From Podarcis bocagei (lineage: Eukaryota): a stretch of DNA of 64,000 nt. Both the position numbers and the translations under genes were made by a program. The notes beneath the pieces were generated by a model, which saw only the letters and a list, made by a program, of their open reading frames with translations, was not told where the DNA came from and searched no databases. The stretch lies in NCBI GenBank assembly GCA_964188305.1, contig OZ076886.1. One strand, 5' to 3'. Numbering within the stretch: position 1 is the first letter of the stretch; each line of letters begins with the position of its first letter. Shown here piece by piece: positions 55,904 to 64,000 of the stretch.

Positions 55904-57223
55904 GTGTAGGTAGTCTTGGAGGCAAGACATCAATTTTGCAGCCTCGGGTGGTGGTTTCAGGCCTTGGGCGGAATCCTTTAGTCTATCTTCCTAAATGGGG
56001 GGGGGGCATGAAGCGGTGACCCACGCTCCCCTTGTGGCAGTGATCTCAGGGTTCCCCGTTAAAGTGTTCTTGAGGGGAGGCATTGGCCATACGCCGAGAG
56101 GTTGTCATTGCTCTCCCCTCCAACAGTGGGGAAACAGGGGGCAGGCTCTCTGCTTGAACATATGTTCTCCAGAGCCAGCCCAATCCCCACACATTCTGGA
56201 TAACCCTGATGTCTCCCAGGTCTCCCAGGCTGGGTACTGGGAAGGATAAACACCCAATGCCTGAGCCAAGGTCTCCGTACATCTGAAATATAATAAAGTT
56301 GTGGCCAATTTTAATCCCATAGCATGTTGTCTTGAGTCATTATTCCGCTCAGGGGTCGCCTGGGGGGTGGGGGGACTCTGCCTGTCCACGCAATAAGCTA
56401 CTCCTACTTCAAAGGAAATAGTTCTGTTCATTCCAAGTAAATTTGAGGTAAACAAGGAGGAAAGGGCGGAATCACCATTAGGAAATTTCAGTGAAGATGA
56501 AATCTGTCAATGTATAGTCAAATCTGGAGTGTAGGGTTCAAAATAAAAATAAAAGTGAAAGGCTGTTTTCCCTGTCTAGAGTTCAACAAGCACAGCATTT
56601 TCTGTTGGGGGCAAAAGGGTGACAGGCCTAGAGAATAAGTAGCGGACCACCATATTTAATTGTTTCAAAGTCTAAAAATAAACATGAGCAAACATCAAGG
56701 GAGTTTAAAATGTTTGTTAAGAAATTCAGGGCAACAAGTGGCATGCCATATAATCTCTGGTTACATTCTACTCTTCAGAGCATAATGCCCCATTGTAAGA
56801 ATAGTACAATGTGCTGCGATTCCCTTACAATGGGAGTGTTGTACAACTGTCAGTGAATATTCAGAAGTGTGTGGTTGGTTATCACATAGACATAACAAAT
56901 ATTCATACATATTTATTTAAATGTCCAGTCTGACTTTCCAGAGGGAACAAACACACACACGTAAGAATGTACAGTATGGGCTAGGAGCAGCGACTGTCTT
57001 CAAAGTCTCAGGCAAAAAGGGTTCTCATCCCTGCAATTTGGGATTCGTTTTTAGTGGAGTTGGTAGAGACTGAACCTGGGGATTTTCCACATGTGAAGAA
57101 GAAACACATCAAACGAACCACGGCCTTTTCCCATTATGTAAAATCTAAAATATTATTTTATATCATTTAAAATCAGGCTAAAATAAAAGATGTGCTTAAA
57201 ACCCAGGCACTTACTTAACTCTA

Positions 57224-57519
57224 GGGCTTGCCCACGCTTACTGTTGGCCTTGCTCTTTCCCCACTCTTTCCAGTCACAGGTCCATGCTTTAAAGCTGCAT
57301 GTCTGAGCATCCTTTTTCTGGAGGTTTCCCTGTGAAAACCTGCTCTTTAGTGTTCAATCGGAGCAAACGTCAATTTGGGATTTCTGCAGATTGCCGATTG
57401 AGCTTTAAAGAGCGGGTTTTCATGGGGAAAGTTCTGGAGCAAAAAAGAGGGAGCTGGATACGGAGCTTTAAAGCGTGGACTGTGCCTGGAAAGTGTGGAG
57501 GAAAGTGGGGATAAATCCC
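57224..57519. mobile_element. Palindromic Harbinger-like MITE
   Basis: Arms CTTTCCAGTCACAGGTCCATGCTTTAAAGCT / AGCTTTAAAGCGTGGACTGTGCCTGGAAAG; TAG flanks. Confidence 0.65.
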
Positions 57520-59589
57520 TAGTACTGAGAACCAGCCAAAATAGAAGTTCTAGCACCATTTTATGGGGACAATGGATGCATTCCCTTTGCATTGTATGAA
57601 TATGGGGATGAGGATCCCACACTCATCTATTGGATTTCTCTTTTCTCTGCAGTGAATAGCTTGCGGGGGGGGGGGGATCTGACAGCAGCAATGCTGAGAC
57701 ATAAGTATTATGTTTCCCGTGTGCGCAGGATAGCTATAGCAACCCTCGTTTCAAATATCTCTTCTCAATTGTTCTGTTGATGGACAGTGGTACATCAGAG
57801 TATGCAAGCCTCTCCCAATGCCTTTGACACTCCCCCAGCGGCCAGTGCCACGAGAGGGAAACAAACACAATCCTAATAACTTTACATTGGTGTGGATAAC
57901 TGGCAGGGGGTGGGAGGAAAGGCAAAGGTCGTGTTGCCAAAGTCACATTCATTTCATGTTGCGAGTCAGCCCTTTCTGTTGACACAATGGTTAAGCAGCT
58001 TGGAGATTAACTGTTTGCTCTGTCCCAAGGAGATGATCTCATCGGAGATAGATTTTGCTATTGTTCCTCCGAGGGATTGACTTCTTTCAAACAGGGAGCT
58101 TCAATGCGGCTTGTGCAGCAGAGATAGGCAGTACAAAGCAGGCCCCTGGCAGTTCAAACAGAGCTGGGAATGCTCAAGGCTTTCAAGCACAACGCTGTAT
58201 GTTTTGGCCGGTGGCCAGATGCATGGAGAGTGTGCAGAATCGCTTGAGAGGAGGAAGGAGGGCAGAGAAAAACCATATGCCTTCAAAACGTCCAGCGTAA
58301 AATGTGACGGTGTCTAGAGCTCAGATAAGCAAGGTGGACAGCAAATAAGACTGACGGTTCCTTCAGTGGAGCGAATCTTCTTTTAATGTAAGGACCAAAA
58401 CCTGGCACCATGGGCCCTTTCTTTTTGCTACACATGGGCCACTAGGGCAGGACCATGAGTAGCCAGTAGGCAACACATTCTACCTGCAGAAATGGGCAGA
58501 AGACCTGGGTGCAGCTGCTTGGTCCTCTGTTATCTTGCATCCACGGTATCTAACTGTGTAGCTGCCTATAAGCAGTGCTGCACTTGGGTAACTTTAGACT
58601 CTGGATTTAATAATCTTTTGGGAGAGGGCTCTTCAAATAGTAATGAGCATTATTTCAACGTGGCTAAGCCAGGCATTCTATGTTTGGGGGCCCTGTTGCT
58701 CCTTCTGCTGTGTGGGCCCTGGACAACTGACTGCAAGTTCTCCCTTGAAGGCCCCACTGCCTGTCAGGCATGCCTCTGCCTCTCTCACATGCAAACAAAC
58801 ACACCATATACCCTGGCATAGCAATATTGGTGGGCTTGGAGAAAGTAAAGGATGCCCACCTTTGAAATATGACTAAGAACAGCCAAAGAAAGCAGAATTA
58901 AGCTAGGACAAGGGGGAGCGGAGCAAAGAATCAGGGTCTCCACACTGCTTGTGTCAAAGGTGACAATGAGCTTTAGATGTCCTTGTACCAGAAATGCCTT
59001 TGCTGTGTGTGTTGTGCTTACTTGTGCTCCCCTCCACACGCAGGCCAAAGAACTGAGAGGCAGGAAGCATTTCACACAGTAAAATCCCCCCCCCCCGGCT
59101 TTCCTTCTCATTCTCTTACTAAGTCCTCACATGCACACCCGTAACCGAGCAACAGAGGATGGGGCACAGGGTGAGGTGTGAGGAGGAAGAGTAAGTTACT
59201 TCATTTATTTATTTGTTTGTTTATTAAAAGGGATCCTGGTGCCAGCAGGTGGAGCAGGAAGGAACCGGTTGAGATGCTATCTGATGCCCAGTGTTCCTTA
59301 AAGGACTCTTTGGCAGAGCAGGCTGTGGAAAACACATAATGGAGCACATTCTCTCCTTGATGCTCTGTGTAGTGACTGATACGTTGGTGCGCTAATTCCT
59401 GGCCCCCTTCTAAACAGAAGCCCTTCAGTTCAAAGTGTTCGAGGGAACTCTATAGCCATCTCATCTGCTACATCGATGCCAGCTAGTATCATAATTGCCC
59501 CGCTCCCTGCAATGGAAAAATAGTTCTGCAGATTTCACTCTACCTTTTCTTTAGGCTTCAATACAATTTTCCCCTTTTATTGCTGTTGT

Positions 59590-59949
59590 CAGGAGGTCCC
59601 GCTGGGTGCGCGAGGCTTGGGGCGGCAGCGGACTGCTTGCGCGCACCTAGAAGCTTGGGGCGGGCTGAGCTCAGCTGGCCCCAAGCTTCTAGGTACGCGC
59701 AAGCAGTCCGCTGCCGCCCCAAGCCTCGCGCACCCGGCGGGACCTCCTGCCGGGTGCGGGAGGCTTGGGGCGGCAGCGGACTGCTTGCCGGCACGCAGAA
59801 GCTTGGGGCGCACTGACCTCAGCTTGCCCCAAGCTTCTGGATTAGCGCAGCGCACCTGGGGGGGAAATAAATTTTTTTTCCTTTATTTCCCCCCCTAAAA
59901 TCTAGGTGCGTCTTATGGGCCGGTGCGTCTTATGGGGCGAAAAATACGG
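59590..59949 (+). mobile_element. Right half of a Tc2-like (Tc1/mariner superfamily) MITE
   Basis: Ends GTGCGTCTTATGGGGCGAAAAATACGG|TA; GC-rich palindromic interior shared with 61210-61706; only one TIR. Confidence 0.85.
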
Positions 59950-61048
59950 TATTCAACTTCTGCAGCAAGGCTACTTGTTTCGTATTTTAGTGGATAAGTG
60001 CACAAAATGTTATGTCAAGTGAACTTCTGTTAAGGATTTACCTTTAGAGATCACTGACAATGGGGCCTTTGAAGTCCATTATAAATCTGTGCTTCTATGA
60101 TACTTTTATTCTACCCACAGACTGAATTCACAAATGCATCTCTAACCCTTGATGATGACAACATCACATCACCTAAAATACGACTGAGACAATTCCACAG
60201 TCCTAGTGAAGAGGCATTGGGTGATCTGATGTCCAAGAATGCCTGTGTGAATCAATCCTGCTTTTCAGCAAAATATTATCTGGTCAGGCTCAGTAGAGCT
60301 ATAACAAAACAGATTTGCAAGCTATGCTCCTATTTTTGGCCTCTGACTAATCTGCGGGTTCTGAAATTTCTCTCTGCAGTGTTTTGCCTCAGCACTTGCC
60401 TTGCTTCGTGTCCTAGTGATTTGAGGCACAATGACGTCACAGGACTTGGCCATGAGATAGAAAGCATCAAATCAGAATTTGTACTTTGGCACAGGCTGTT
60501 CAATCATTTCATTCAGCAAATTTGTCTGGTACGTTTGGACATTTTGATGAGTAAACACCCATGAGGCCGTTGTTGACAAAGCTAAAAAAACACACCAGAA
60601 AAGAGCTCCATTTTTGGAATGGAGCCATTTAAATTAGCTAAACTAAACAGACATGAACTTTTGTGAATACATTTAATTAATCTGTAATGCTCAGATGCTA
60701 TATTACTAACAGATGCACTTGACTAGGCAGAAGATAACCATATCCTAAAGCAAAGATACCTGCAAAATACAGCAGGCTAAGATATATGTTATAAAAATGG
60801 AAGCATATGCTAAAGAACTCTCTGGCCCATAACACTGAGATTCAAAATGTTATGACAGAACGTATCACAAATTTCAGGGGTGCGTGGGTGGGTGTCTGTT
60901 GTGGGTGTTTGATAAAGGAAACAGAAAAGAAAGAAAGAAGCAGAGCACCCAAAAATGCAGATAGCATGCATTCTTAGACATTTCATAAATAGAGGGCCAC
61001 CTTATTATTGACTGAATGGTTGTTTTCTGCTTTAATATAGTCAACAGC

Positions 61049-61168
61049 TGTCAGAGCTGCTTCAAGATCCTAGCTCACAGAGGATCACGCTAGCCAGCGG
61101 TCATTAAGTAAAAGTCTTTATTGAGTTACAGTTTCCATTCCCAAGCTACTGCGTGCAACTCTACGTCT
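61049..61168 (-). mobile_element. Truncated solo-LTR fragment
   Basis: ACAGC|TGTCA terminus; TTTATT near 61117; matching terminus and TSD (GCTGT|TGTCA) found inverted at 59582-59591. Confidence 0.6.
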
Positions 61169-61209
61169 AATACAGCAGGCTAAGATATATGTTATAAAAA
61201 TGGAAGCAA

Positions 61210-61706
61210 GAGGTCCGACCGGGTGCGCGAGGCTTGGGGCGGCAGCCTGTCGCCCGAAGCACGGGGAGCCCTCTGGAGGGCTCCCCCTGCTTCGGGCGAG
61301 TGTCTGCAAGCCTCGCGCACCCGGCAGGAGGTCCCGCTGGGTGCGCGAGGCTTGGGGCGGCAGCGGACTGCTTGCGCGCACCTAGAAGCTTGGGGCGGGC
61401 TGAGCTCAGCTGGCCCCAAGCTTCTAGGTGCGCGCAAGCACTCCGCTGCCGCCCCAAGCCTCGCGCACCCAGCGCGACCTCCTGCCGGGTGCGCAAGGCT
61501 TGCAGACACTCGCCCGAAGCAGGGGGAGCCCTCCAGAGGGCTCCCCGTGCTTCGGGCGACAGGCTGCCGCCCCAAGCCTCGCGCACCCGGTCGGACCTCC
61601 TGCCGGGCGCGCAAGGCTTGCAGGCATTCGCCCCATAAGACGCACCCCGATTTCCCCTTCATTTTTGGAGGGGAAAAAGTGCGTCTTATGGGGCGAAAAA
61701 TACGGT
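61210..61706 (-). mobile_element. Left half of the same Tc2-like MITE, inverted relative to the right half
   Basis: TIR ...GGGGCGAAAAATACGG|TA at about 61680-61708; subterminal inverted copy TTCGCCCCATAAGACGCAC at 61628; nested palindromes. Confidence 0.85.
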
Positions 61707-62835
61707 AATTGATTTTGGCTTGATTTTAGGCGTGCAAAACTGCTAATTCTCAGCAGTGCAGATTAGTTCTCTTCTTCGTTCTTATTCAGTGACAGGATAT
61801 TGGGTTAAAGCTGGCAGATCTGGGTTTTTCAGCCTTGAACTGCCTGAGTAGATTATTATTCTCAGTTTCCTATAAGTAAAATGGGAACATTAATTTCCTG
61901 TTTACTGCATACATATTTTTACATCCATGCAAGCAGCATCAGTGTACATAAGCCCAGCCCCCAAAGGTTCTACCCTACAGAACTCTCAGTTTGACAACAG
62001 GGAGATAACAGAAGGAGGGACGGTTTGGGAAAGGCAATGCAATGTTGTGATTAGAGATCTAGTGAACTTGATCCAGCCACTCAGACTAATCTGTTGTTTT
62101 AGATATAAAATGGGGTAGTGGGGAGAGTTCCTTAGAGCAAATGCCTTACGTAAATGTGAAGAAATCCACTTATAGGTCTACTTAGACTTTCTGTGGTTGG
62201 GAATGAAGACGCCAACCATAGGAATGTCAGAAGGGCACAGGCAATGAAGACTGCACAACTCACTGTATATAGGAGTCACACAACAGCCATAACAAACAGT
62301 TTATTTTAAAAGCTTCCTAAATAATATTGACAGGTATTTTTTTAAAAAACCAACCCCCTCCTACTGAATATCCATATAAGTGTTCTGAACAGGTGCATGT
62401 CACAACAGGCTAGGTTTTAAAGTTAGTAAATATGAATTCCCAAGTTCAGTTTAAATTTATAGCCATTGAAAAAGAAGTTTTTTTTTTCTGAGGCAGCACC
62501 TTATTACTGCCCCAAGTGCTTAGATAAGCTGCTGCTTTGCTTATGCTCCACCAGCAGTTGAAGACTTTTCCTTAAATTATTGTATGCTTTTCTCTGAGTC
62601 TCTGGATTATTTTTGCTGCTTCTAGTATGATTATGTGTTTTTTATAATTTTAAATTGGATTTTAATCATTTTAAAATTAAAAGTGTATGACTTCCCCATA
62701 AGAATTCTGAGAACTGTTGTTTTTGCTGGGAATTGTAGCTCTGTGAGTGATAAACTACAGTTCCCAGTATTATTTGGGGGAAGTCACATACTTTGAATGT
62801 ATGGTGTGTAAGCAGCCTTAGCTCTGTTTAGAGAT

Positions 62836-63121
62836 ACACTGAGGTCCAGCGCCGAGGGCCTTCTGGCGGTTCCCTCATTGCGAGAAGCAAAGCTACAGGG
62901 ATCCAGGCAGAGGGCCTTCTCGGTAGTGGCACCCGCCCTGTGGAACGCCCTCCCTTCAGATGTCAAAGCGATCAACAATTACCTGACATTCAGAAGACAT
63001 CTTAAGGCAGCCCTGTTCAGGGAAGTTTTTAATGTGTGGTTTTAGTGTATTTTTGGGTTCTATGGAAGCCGCCCAGAGTGGCTGGGGAAACCCAGACAGA
63101 TGGGCAGGGTACAAATAATAA

Positions 63122-63165
<44 letters not shown>
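62836..63165 (+). mobile_element. L2 LINE 3' end with (TTA)n tail
   Basis: AGGGCCTTCTCGGTAGTGGCACCCGCCCTGTGGAACGCCCTCCC (RAFSVVAPALWNALP); GGAAGCCGCCCAGAGTGGCTG; (TTA)n tail 63123-63165. Confidence 0.9.
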
Positions 63166-63167
<2 letters not shown>

Positions 63168-64000
63168 GCTTGGGTTTCCCTCTTCACATCCTCAGGTGAT
63201 CAAAATAATAGGAATTCTGCTTTTTCTATAGCAGCATCTTCATAAAGACCAAATGTCTGTAATATGCCATCAGAACTCATATTTCTTTGTGAGTTTTTGC
63301 ATCACAAAGGCTGCAATCCTAGACCCAGATACTGGTAGTAATCCTCATTGAACTCAGTAGGGCTGACTTCTGAGTAGACATGTTTAGAATTGTGCTGTAA
63401 TCCCCTGAAAGATGTAAGGGGTGGGTAGGTCGCAAGAAACTCTGATTTCTTCTATGTTAGCTCCTGCACTCAGTAGACTATATTCCTTCCCAGACCACCC
63501 CAACATTGCAGCAGCAAGAGAATGGAAAGCCTAGGTGTGTACTTCTTGACACTGTGGTGCAGGAGACACGCATAAGAGCCGTAAAATTAAATTGTCATTA
63601 AATTAAAAACAGACTGCATATGCATTGAGCTAACGCCAGAGCCTGAAGATCTGCAAGCCAGATCCCATAGGAAACTAAATATGCCTCGGTATAATTAGCG
63701 ATTACTGCTTTGTGAATCTATAATAGATTATGTGGCCATACATGATTTATGCAGCACGGAGAAGAGCTTTGTATGCAGCTGTGATGTGACGTCGGTGTCT
63801 CTTTATGTGCCTCCATTGCGAGTGCAGGGGCTTAATGAGGAGGTTGTTCATATCCTGGCTGTGCTCGCGATTCTGCCGTTTTAGGTGTACTGTATACATA
63901 GCCACATGCTCATTAATATGCCATTCAAACAAAACACAAAGCCCTTCAAGCTGGAGGAAGAAGGTCTCCTAGACAAGCAAACCCAAGCTGCCTAGCATTA

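Follow-up and report, generated by a model that had tools for sequence, protein, structure and literature searches.

Among the closest described systems, the foldback-type transposon Galileo of Drosophila buzzatii has given rise to inversions through ectopic recombination between two of its copies, and reversed-ends transposition of Ac/Ds yields a flipped segment bounded at either side by a single element end. Human germline inversion junctions are known to carry templated insertions together with short microhomology (PMC7702065), and the fragility of palindromes has been reviewed (PMC7999016). The locus considered here lies in a 64,000-nt stretch of Podarcis bocagei DNA (assembly GCA_964188305.1, contig OZ076886.1), referred to below as the window. 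In all probability it carries a real derived inversion that has split two insertions, one a MITE and the other an LTR-like element, the derived allele being known from this assembly alone. The ancestral arrangement, the two target-site duplications (TSDs), the inversion and the junction sequences can be read directly; we infer in what order the events took place, which pathway repaired the breaks and how far DNA secondary structure contributed.

The arrangement was established by aligning to the window the contigs of four other genomes (n=4), namely another sample under the same species label that is ~0.9% diverged from it (X1) and three relatives at ~1.3% (X5), ~1.2% (X18) and ~2.9% (X13). 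In each of the four, a single contig runs from the left flank (58400-59588) through the reverse complement of 59952-61041 into the right flank from 61706 onward. Both joints are made with zero added letters, the record coordinates are contiguous, and at least 255 letters lie on either side of each; at the joint 59588/61041 of this unflipped allele 7 nt (GCTGTTG) fit both sides, and at the joint 59952/61706 2 nt (TA) do so. Thus 4/4 of the other genomes are without either element and hold 59952-61041 in the orientation opposite to that of the window. With both junctions present and the outgroup orientation reversed in every comparison, the most diverged (2.9%) included, the window has the form of a simple inversion. 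GCTGT and TA are each single in the empty allele and each double in the window, beside exact element termini, which implies insertion of the LTR-like element at GCTGT and of the MITE at TA, followed by inversion of approximately 59590-61168. An earlier note on this DNA had rebuilt a 1.6-kb inversion from the two split elements, and the empty sites and opposite orientation of 59952-61041 in the four genomes bear it out. The derived allele is apparently private to the haplotype of the window. Three events within 1.1 kb since a haplotype split of ~0.9% are many, even with active families, a consideration that weighs against this history. The features of the rearranged locus are as follows.

59582-59586, plus strand: left copy of GCTGT, the 5-bp TSD of the LTR-like element; single in the empty allele of the four genomes, the second window copy being inverted at 61044-61048.
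59587-59592, plus strand: what is left of the 5' end of the LTR-like element, TGT(CAG), with the left junction of the inversion; mirrors the terminus at 61049-61054, CAG being microhomology with the MITE spacer.
59590-59949, minus strand: M1, the now inverted left-hand half of the MITE, comprising spacer and hairpin modules; palindrome centre at 59669/59670, TIR at 59923-59949.
59950-59951, strand not applicable: first copy of the TA TSD; the empty allele has one TA, and 2 nt fit both sides of the joint 59952/61706.
59952-61043, minus strand: 1.09-kb host segment, turned round from its ancestral orientation; on the opposite strand to both flanks in single contigs of X1, X5, X13 and X18.
60766-60805, plus strand: template (ancestral copy) of the 40-bp insertion; within the single-copy segment of all four other genomes, with a 40/40 match to 61169-61208.
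61044-61048, minus strand: right, inverted copy of the 5-bp TSD, ACAGC on the plus strand; from the empty allele against the window.
61049-61168, minus strand: terminal 120 bp of the LTR-like element, cut off at 61168; of a highly repeated family, with AATAAA ~75 nt before the ...TGACA end (minus strand).
61169-61208, plus strand: 40-bp templated insertion where the inversion joins on the right; copied exactly and in direct orientation from 60766-60805, its final 2-3 nt, (G)CA, overlapping the MITE spacer.
61209-61705, plus strand: M2, the right-hand half of the MITE; contains a 2x199-nt palindrome (centre 61404/61405) and the TIR at 61679-61705.
61706-61707, strand not applicable: second copy of the TA TSD; from the empty allele against the window.

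That the two MITE halves belong to one element is evident from their ends. The terminal 29 nt (TIR plus TA) of M1 (59923-59951) and of M2 (61679-61707) are identical on the plus strand (29/29), and this terminus has only two copies in the 64-kb window, where 0 are expected by chance. Each terminus adjoins TA and then host DNA; the single TA of the empty allele corresponds to the two of the window, at 59950-59951 and 61706-61707, and once the inversion is undone the 29-nt ends become perfect inverted termini. By its TA duplication and TIRs, the split element is a TA-inserting (Tc1/mariner-type) non-autonomous transposon, the narrower label Tc2-like being that of the earlier note. Given that both TIRs flank one ancestral TA, a single insertion is indicated, and the earlier description of two half-elements pointing the same way, with one TIR each, stands on these identical ends and their shared TA. 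Two independent 5'-truncated insertions that point the same way, without any inversion, might have been entertained, as each copy consists of array followed by one TIR and both have the same palindrome centre. That account is refuted by the reversed segment in 4/4 genomes and by the single ancestral TA between the termini; the comparison with other haplotypes and species, which had been named as the deciding one, thus returned opposite orientation in all four rather than a pair of truncated insertions lying the same way.

The interior of the MITE is an array of GC-rich hairpin modules with a 148-nt period. The 80-nt arms in M1 are 95% complementary and the 199-nt arms in M2 97%, and 178 nt of M1 are 97% identical to 61325-61502 in M2, the first 105 nt without a difference. 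Fold-back synthesis was considered as a source of the M1 and M2 palindromes and set aside, the arms being only 95-97% complementary against the 100% identity found in the products of the recent event. No further MITE or LTR-like copy was returned when 59400-61900 was compared by self-BLAST with the whole window, exact-pattern scans of public metagenome, viral and genome contig collections gave no match to other MITE or array copies, and Rfam gave none for 57000-64000.

The LTR-like element is recognised by a 5-bp duplication (within the 4-6 bp, fixed-length range), GCTGT being single in the empty allele and doubled in the window, and by its 3' terminus. At 59582-59591 GCTGT is followed by TGTCA, and at 61044-61053 ACAGC is followed by TGTCA. 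The 3' terminus, ...CTGACA, is clear, one contig of the family starting exactly at 61049. The 5' end, TGTCAG, fits TG...CA termini, but T59589 alone is uniquely attributable to the element, because the ancestral sequence has TG there too and CA(G) is shared with the MITE spacer. Accordingly, the proposal of an LTR bounded by TGTCA...TGACA and flanked by the 5-bp TSD GCTGT holds for the coordinates, the duplication and the 3' end, and for one base of the 5' TGTCA. The family of 61049-61168 has a summed contig depth ~10^4 times the single-copy depth in X1, X5 and X18, and its other copies run on beyond 61168 (loose contig ends). To call the element a solo LTR is an assumption; with only 120 bp plus 1-6 nt left, a full-length element is also conceivable.

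The junctions themselves are informative as to how the segment was rejoined. At the left junction the remaining 5' end of the LTR-like element has up to 3 nt (CAG) in common with the MITE spacer as microhomology. At the right junction a 40-bp sequence (61169-61208) stands between the LTR-like fragment and M2 and is an exact copy of 60766-60805; 0 such matches are expected by chance, identity is 40/40, and this copy is missing from the ancestral allele, as expected of a templated insertion. One odd base, A61209, directly follows it, and there is zero microhomology where the LTR-like fragment meets it (61168/61169). Reversal of 59592-61168 had been put forward as rejoining the MITE; it does restore one insertion with TA on both sides, but the halves are not directly abutted, the 40-bp duplicate lying between them. 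Both MITE-side ends sit just before GAGGTCC, mirroring each other within two spacers of opposite orientation, whose flanks, CGCTG and GACCG, differ at 3/5 positions. A hairpin-cap model, in which a cruciform is resolved and opened off-centre so that the loop is duplicated on both ends in the manner of P nucleotides, is ruled out by these differences. The joined partners, LTR-like fragment and MITE, have no similarity beyond 3 nt by self-BLAST of 59400-61900 and inspection of the junctions, and non-allelic homologous recombination (NAHR) between inverted repeats is ruled out by this want of homology.

Given that the inversion is real, a pair of double-strand breaks, repaired by end joining that draws on microhomology together with templated synthesis of the polymerase-theta type, is the preferred and somewhat the more probable explanation. 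The LTR-like retroelement integrated at GCTGT, generating the 5-bp duplication, and the MITE, before or after it, at a TA ~1.09 kb away. Breaks would then have occurred inside both elements, and the piece between them (now 59590-61168) would have been rejoined in reverse. The break in the MITE would fall in an 18-nt spacer between hairpin modules, both halves being kept with little or no loss, and that in the LTR-like element 3-6 nt from its 5' end, the rest of which would have been lost save for the last 120 bp. The left join would have used the CAG microhomology of up to 3 nt, and at the right join a 40-bp patch, its template lying 363-403 bp within the inverted piece, is followed by the odd base A61209.

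Template switching during replication (FoSTeS/MMBIR) might produce much the same outcome. A fork stalled at the hairpin array would switch to the opposite template at CAG, copy back through the segment, slip back 403 nt, recopy 40 nt and return to M2. An insertion of 40 bp copied in direct orientation from sequence a few hundred bp distant is usually read as MMBIR at inversion junctions (PMC7702065), and the microhomologies of 2-3 nt, the lost interior of the LTR-like element and the odd base beside the junction all suit such a process. The zero microhomology at 61168/61169 does not, and the MITE ends, mirror-adjacent with little or no loss, follow automatically from one two-ended break whereas they would be a coincidence of two independent switches. 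Template switching is the near rival of end joining, though the less probable of the two.

An aberrant, transposase-driven reaction was weighed as well: by a reversed-ends or hybrid-element route, MITE termini not linked as one normal element would have inserted together at TA and inverted the segment in the same step. Both TIRs are indeed joined precisely to one TA target, and an inverted segment with one element end per side is what Ac/Ds produces. Yet the reaction needs an inside-out MITE already lying within the LTR-like element and already joined to the 40-bp patch, more events than insertion followed by breakage, and the inner joins resemble end joining and not transposase chemistry. Such an origin is highly improbable.

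It is also conceivable, though quite unlikely, that the inversion is an artefact of assembly, the true haplotype being uninverted, with both insertions or neither, and mis-oriented around the palindromic array. Long GC-rich palindromes are difficult to sequence and assemble, the derived junctions come from one assembly, and X1, under the same species label, has the ancestral allele. Mis-orientation, however, would not yield a truncated LTR-like element, an exact 40-bp patch and joins at microhomology; moreover, the segment is single, with unique sequence on either side, and the joined partners have no long inverted repeat able to confuse an assembler.

Under the preferred reading, of two breaks repaired by end joining, the first of them was probably provoked by the hairpin array. 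The earlier note placed that break at a palindromic centre of the MITE and implicated a hairpin or cruciform. In part this is sustained, as a local 2x40-nt dyad with a 90% match has its centre at the rejoined MITE junction. For the rejoined element (the reverse complement of M1 plus M2, 863 nt, built in silico for folding), however, the predicted DNA fold sets the junction at the foot between the long hairpins (80-nt and 199-nt arms) and not at a tip, and the more cruciform-prone 2x199-nt palindrome within M2 is unbroken. That hairpin-array MITEs of this lizard genome act as structure-driven fragile sites, breaking at the dyad where the array reverses to give two mirror-image ends, can be suggested only tentatively. 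If they do, an excess of such MITEs would be expected wherever small inversions and other structural variants of wall-lizard genomes have their breakpoints. Had the MITE broken cleanly at the centre of a perfect dyad, intact copies would be expected to show head-to-head spacers where the array reverses, ..GGACCTCCTG then CAGGAGGTCC...

As to consequences for the host, the inverted segment holds no recognisable gene; its only ORF, at 60097-60564 (155 codons), has no Pfam match and is taken as chance. The event is of an ordinary kind and involves neither a new mechanism nor a new element type. Its value is that of a natural micro-inversion so cleanly resolved that the ancestral state, the intermediates and the derived state are legible to the base, through two TSDs, a join at 3 nt of microhomology, the 40-bp templated patch and a deletion on one side. 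It thereby offers a worked example, in a wild vertebrate, of repair signatures familiar from human disease and cancer genomes, and it hints that GC-rich hairpin-array transposons may seed rearrangements.

Set beside the known systems, the locus resembles the non-recurrent inversions that arise in humans by end joining or MMBIR, with which it shares the lack of long homology, microhomology of 0-3 nt, a short insertion templated nearby, sequence loss at one breakpoint and breakpoints within repeat elements (PMC7702065). Unlike those, the lizard inversion is only 1.6 kb, and its breakpoints lie in insertions recent enough for the empty sites to survive in relatives, which permits reconstruction base by base. 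With PATRR translocations and yeast quasi-palindromes it has in common a breakpoint in long, GC-rich, multiply palindromic DNA and mirror-symmetric ends (PMC7999016, PMC3855049). Those systems, however, break at the main palindrome centre (PMC7999016, PMC3855049), whereas here the break is in a spacer between modules, at the centre of a 2x40-nt dyad only, with the 2x199-nt palindrome intact and a partner breakpoint that is not palindromic. As for the Galileo inversions, the likeness is a foldback-like transposon at the breakpoints of the inversion. In the lizard, by contrast, one element has been split, the second breakpoint falls within an LTR-like element unrelated to it, and the sequences that were joined have no homology to each other.

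Whole or in part, this stretch of the window is present in 20 public sequencing runs from seven studies and several organisms, and contigs of four of these runs were aligned to window positions 58400-63000.

Runs compared with the window
X1: organism A, the label of the best-matching runs, although from another sample and another study; about 0.9% diverged from the window
X5: organism E; about 1.3% diverged
X18: organism G; about 1.2% diverged
X13: organism F; about 2.9% diverged

In all four runs a single contig carries 58400-59588 and 61706 onward on one strand, with 59952-61041 between them on the opposite strand. The pieces are contiguous in record coordinates (1-644, 645-1734 and 1735-2925 in X1), and each joint is flanked on both sides by at least 255 letters. 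Given that seven letters at the left joint (GCTGTTG) and two at the right (TA) fit both sides, the ancestral allele is L-GCTGT-rc(U)-TA-R, where L and R are the host flanks and U the host segment between the two halves (M1 and M2) of a hairpin-array MITE. This allele carries neither the MITE nor the LTR-like fragment, and its middle segment is opposite to the window orientation. Because the four genomes agree, the most diverged included, and the window state has extra insertions with duplicated targets, it is not in doubt that the window is derived. The 1.6-kb inversion reconstructed in the earlier note is thus real, with the host DNA between both insertions inverted in the window only; rather than sharing its orientation around two independent truncated insertions, all four orthologues show the opposite orientation and empty sites. 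The observation is confirmed and its interpretation supported.

Other differences in the region, namely GTGGGTG or GTGTATG inserted after 61847 in the other genomes and TTCACTCA after 58445 in X5 and X13, are ordinary indel polymorphisms. A SINE-like repeat with an (ATT)n tail (62836-63170) reaches a summed contig depth of at least 10^5 times single-copy in all four genomes, and many contigs end or fork at 62724, 62836 and 62887.

Features of the derived allele (window coordinates)
59590-59951: M1, GC-rich, multiply palindromic block
59952-61043: host segment U, unique DNA, 1.09 kb, between M1 and M2
61049-61168: LTR-like fragment, 120 bp, starting TGTCAG on the + strand
61169-61208: 40-bp patch, exact copy of 60766-60805, following the LTR-like fragment
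61206/61209-61707: M2, GC-rich, multiply palindromic block

The terminus of M1 adjoins TA and the 59952 end of U, that of M2 adjoins TA and R, and in the empty allele of all four genomes these two host ends are neighbours with one common TA. Both termini therefore flank one ancestral TA and are opposite ends of one insertion that duplicated it, which makes M1 and M2 the halves of a single split element, as had been proposed. Their + strand ends (59923-59951 and 61679-61707) are the same 29 nt, a 27-nt terminal repeat plus TA, found only twice in the window with none expected by chance. Also common to both are a 25-nt arm (seven occurrences), two hairpin-core types and an 18-nt spacer with GAGGTCC or its complement, at repeat periods of 148 and 118 nt; the palindromes measure 2x199 nt in M2 (97% complementary) and 2x80 nt in M1 (95%). 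At the breakpoint end of M1, the first 105 nt (59590-59694) match internal M2 (61325-61429) perfectly in direct orientation, with four mismatches in the next 64 nt; the match may have arisen by chance among array units, through gene conversion or from templated repair. Subterminal M1 (59898-59951) has the inner terminal-repeat motif in tandem (GTGCGTCTTATGGG twice), whereas M2 has a partial inverted terminal-repeat copy (61627-61645) forming a mini-hairpin with 61679-61697. Each of the four compared organisms is rich in the MITE terminus.

The LTR-like fragment has its 61049 terminus beside ACAGC, while GCTGT closes the left flank and TGT comes next; this bears out an insertion at GCTGT that duplicated 5 bp, by an element whose ends are probably of the TG..CA type. 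An X18 family contig starts exactly at 61049 and other copies extend past 61168 (as contig loose ends), so that 61049 is the true family terminus and 61168 a truncation; on the - strand, AATAAA stands about 75 nt ahead of the ...CTGACA end. The left TGTCA, previously read as the other LTR end, is less clear-cut: T59589 is uniquely LTR-like, but TG is also ancestral after GCTGT and CA(G) also begins the MITE spacer. An LTR-like 5' end at the left junction is nevertheless the parsimonious reading, since complete integration must leave that end beside the left target copy. That the element was a solo LTR is an assumption: all but about 125 nt of it has been lost, and a full-length element is equally possible. 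In organisms A, E and G the summed family depth is about 10^4 times single-copy, against about 1.5 in organism F (2.9% diverged), where at 88% likeness or more the family is all but missing; this contrast suggests that the family burst or invaded very recently and in a lineage-specific way. Within the inverted host segment lies a 155-codon ATG ORF (60097-60564, +), probably a chance ORF, with no Pfam match; an Rfam search of 57000-64000 likewise gave no match. The inversion affects no recognisable genes.

The right junction is not the direct join first supposed: it runs from the LTR-like fragment (...GTCT) through the patch, copied in direct orientation from 363-403 bp within the inverted piece, and one A to GAGGTCC. 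Microhomology is at most 3 nt (CAG) at the left join, nil at 61168/61169, and 2-3 nt, (G)CA, between patch end and spacer; A61209 fits neither parent. Recombination between repeats is excluded because the joined partners have no common homology in self-comparison. The derived junctions are known from the assembly itself, the runs compared having come from other individuals; a flip made by the assembler is nonetheless improbable, as truncation of an element, a templated patch and joins with microhomology would not result from one. The junction anatomy points either to end joining that used microhomology and templated synthesis or to replicative template switching. Two physical breaks seem favoured, given that the MITE-side ends are mirror-adjacent, each just ahead of GAGGTCC in two oppositely oriented spacers. 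One two-ended break yields this placement automatically; by a rough estimate, two positions falling independently within a 148-nt period would do so about 5% of the time.

Un-inverted, the MITE ends place ..GGACCTCCTG beside CA(A)GAGGTCC.., and a 2x40-nt dyad (90% match) is centred on this point, which partly supports the proposed break at a palindromic centre. However, in the predicted DNA-parameter fold of the rejoined 863-nt MITE, whose two termini would pair, the junction lies not at a hairpin tip but where two long hairpins (80-nt and 199-nt arms) meet at their feet, and the 2x199-nt palindrome, far more cruciform-prone, is unbroken. Cruciform resolution into hairpin-capped ends each keeping one loop copy was rejected, the spacer flanks being different (CGCTG versus GACCG). 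With palindromes known to be fragile (PMC7999016, PMC3855049), it is a reasonable proposal that DNA structure may have provoked the break in the MITE.

Given that the products of the events are all still perfect (termini 29/29, patch 40/40, both target duplications) and that X1, of the same species label, is without the insertions, inversion or patch, the events are recent and may be confined to this haplotype. Microhomology and templated insertion at inversion junctions are a published signature of templated, microhomology-using end joining or of replicative template switching (PMC7702065). The locus adds a new and well-resolved case to a known kind of structural variant and offers no new mechanism.
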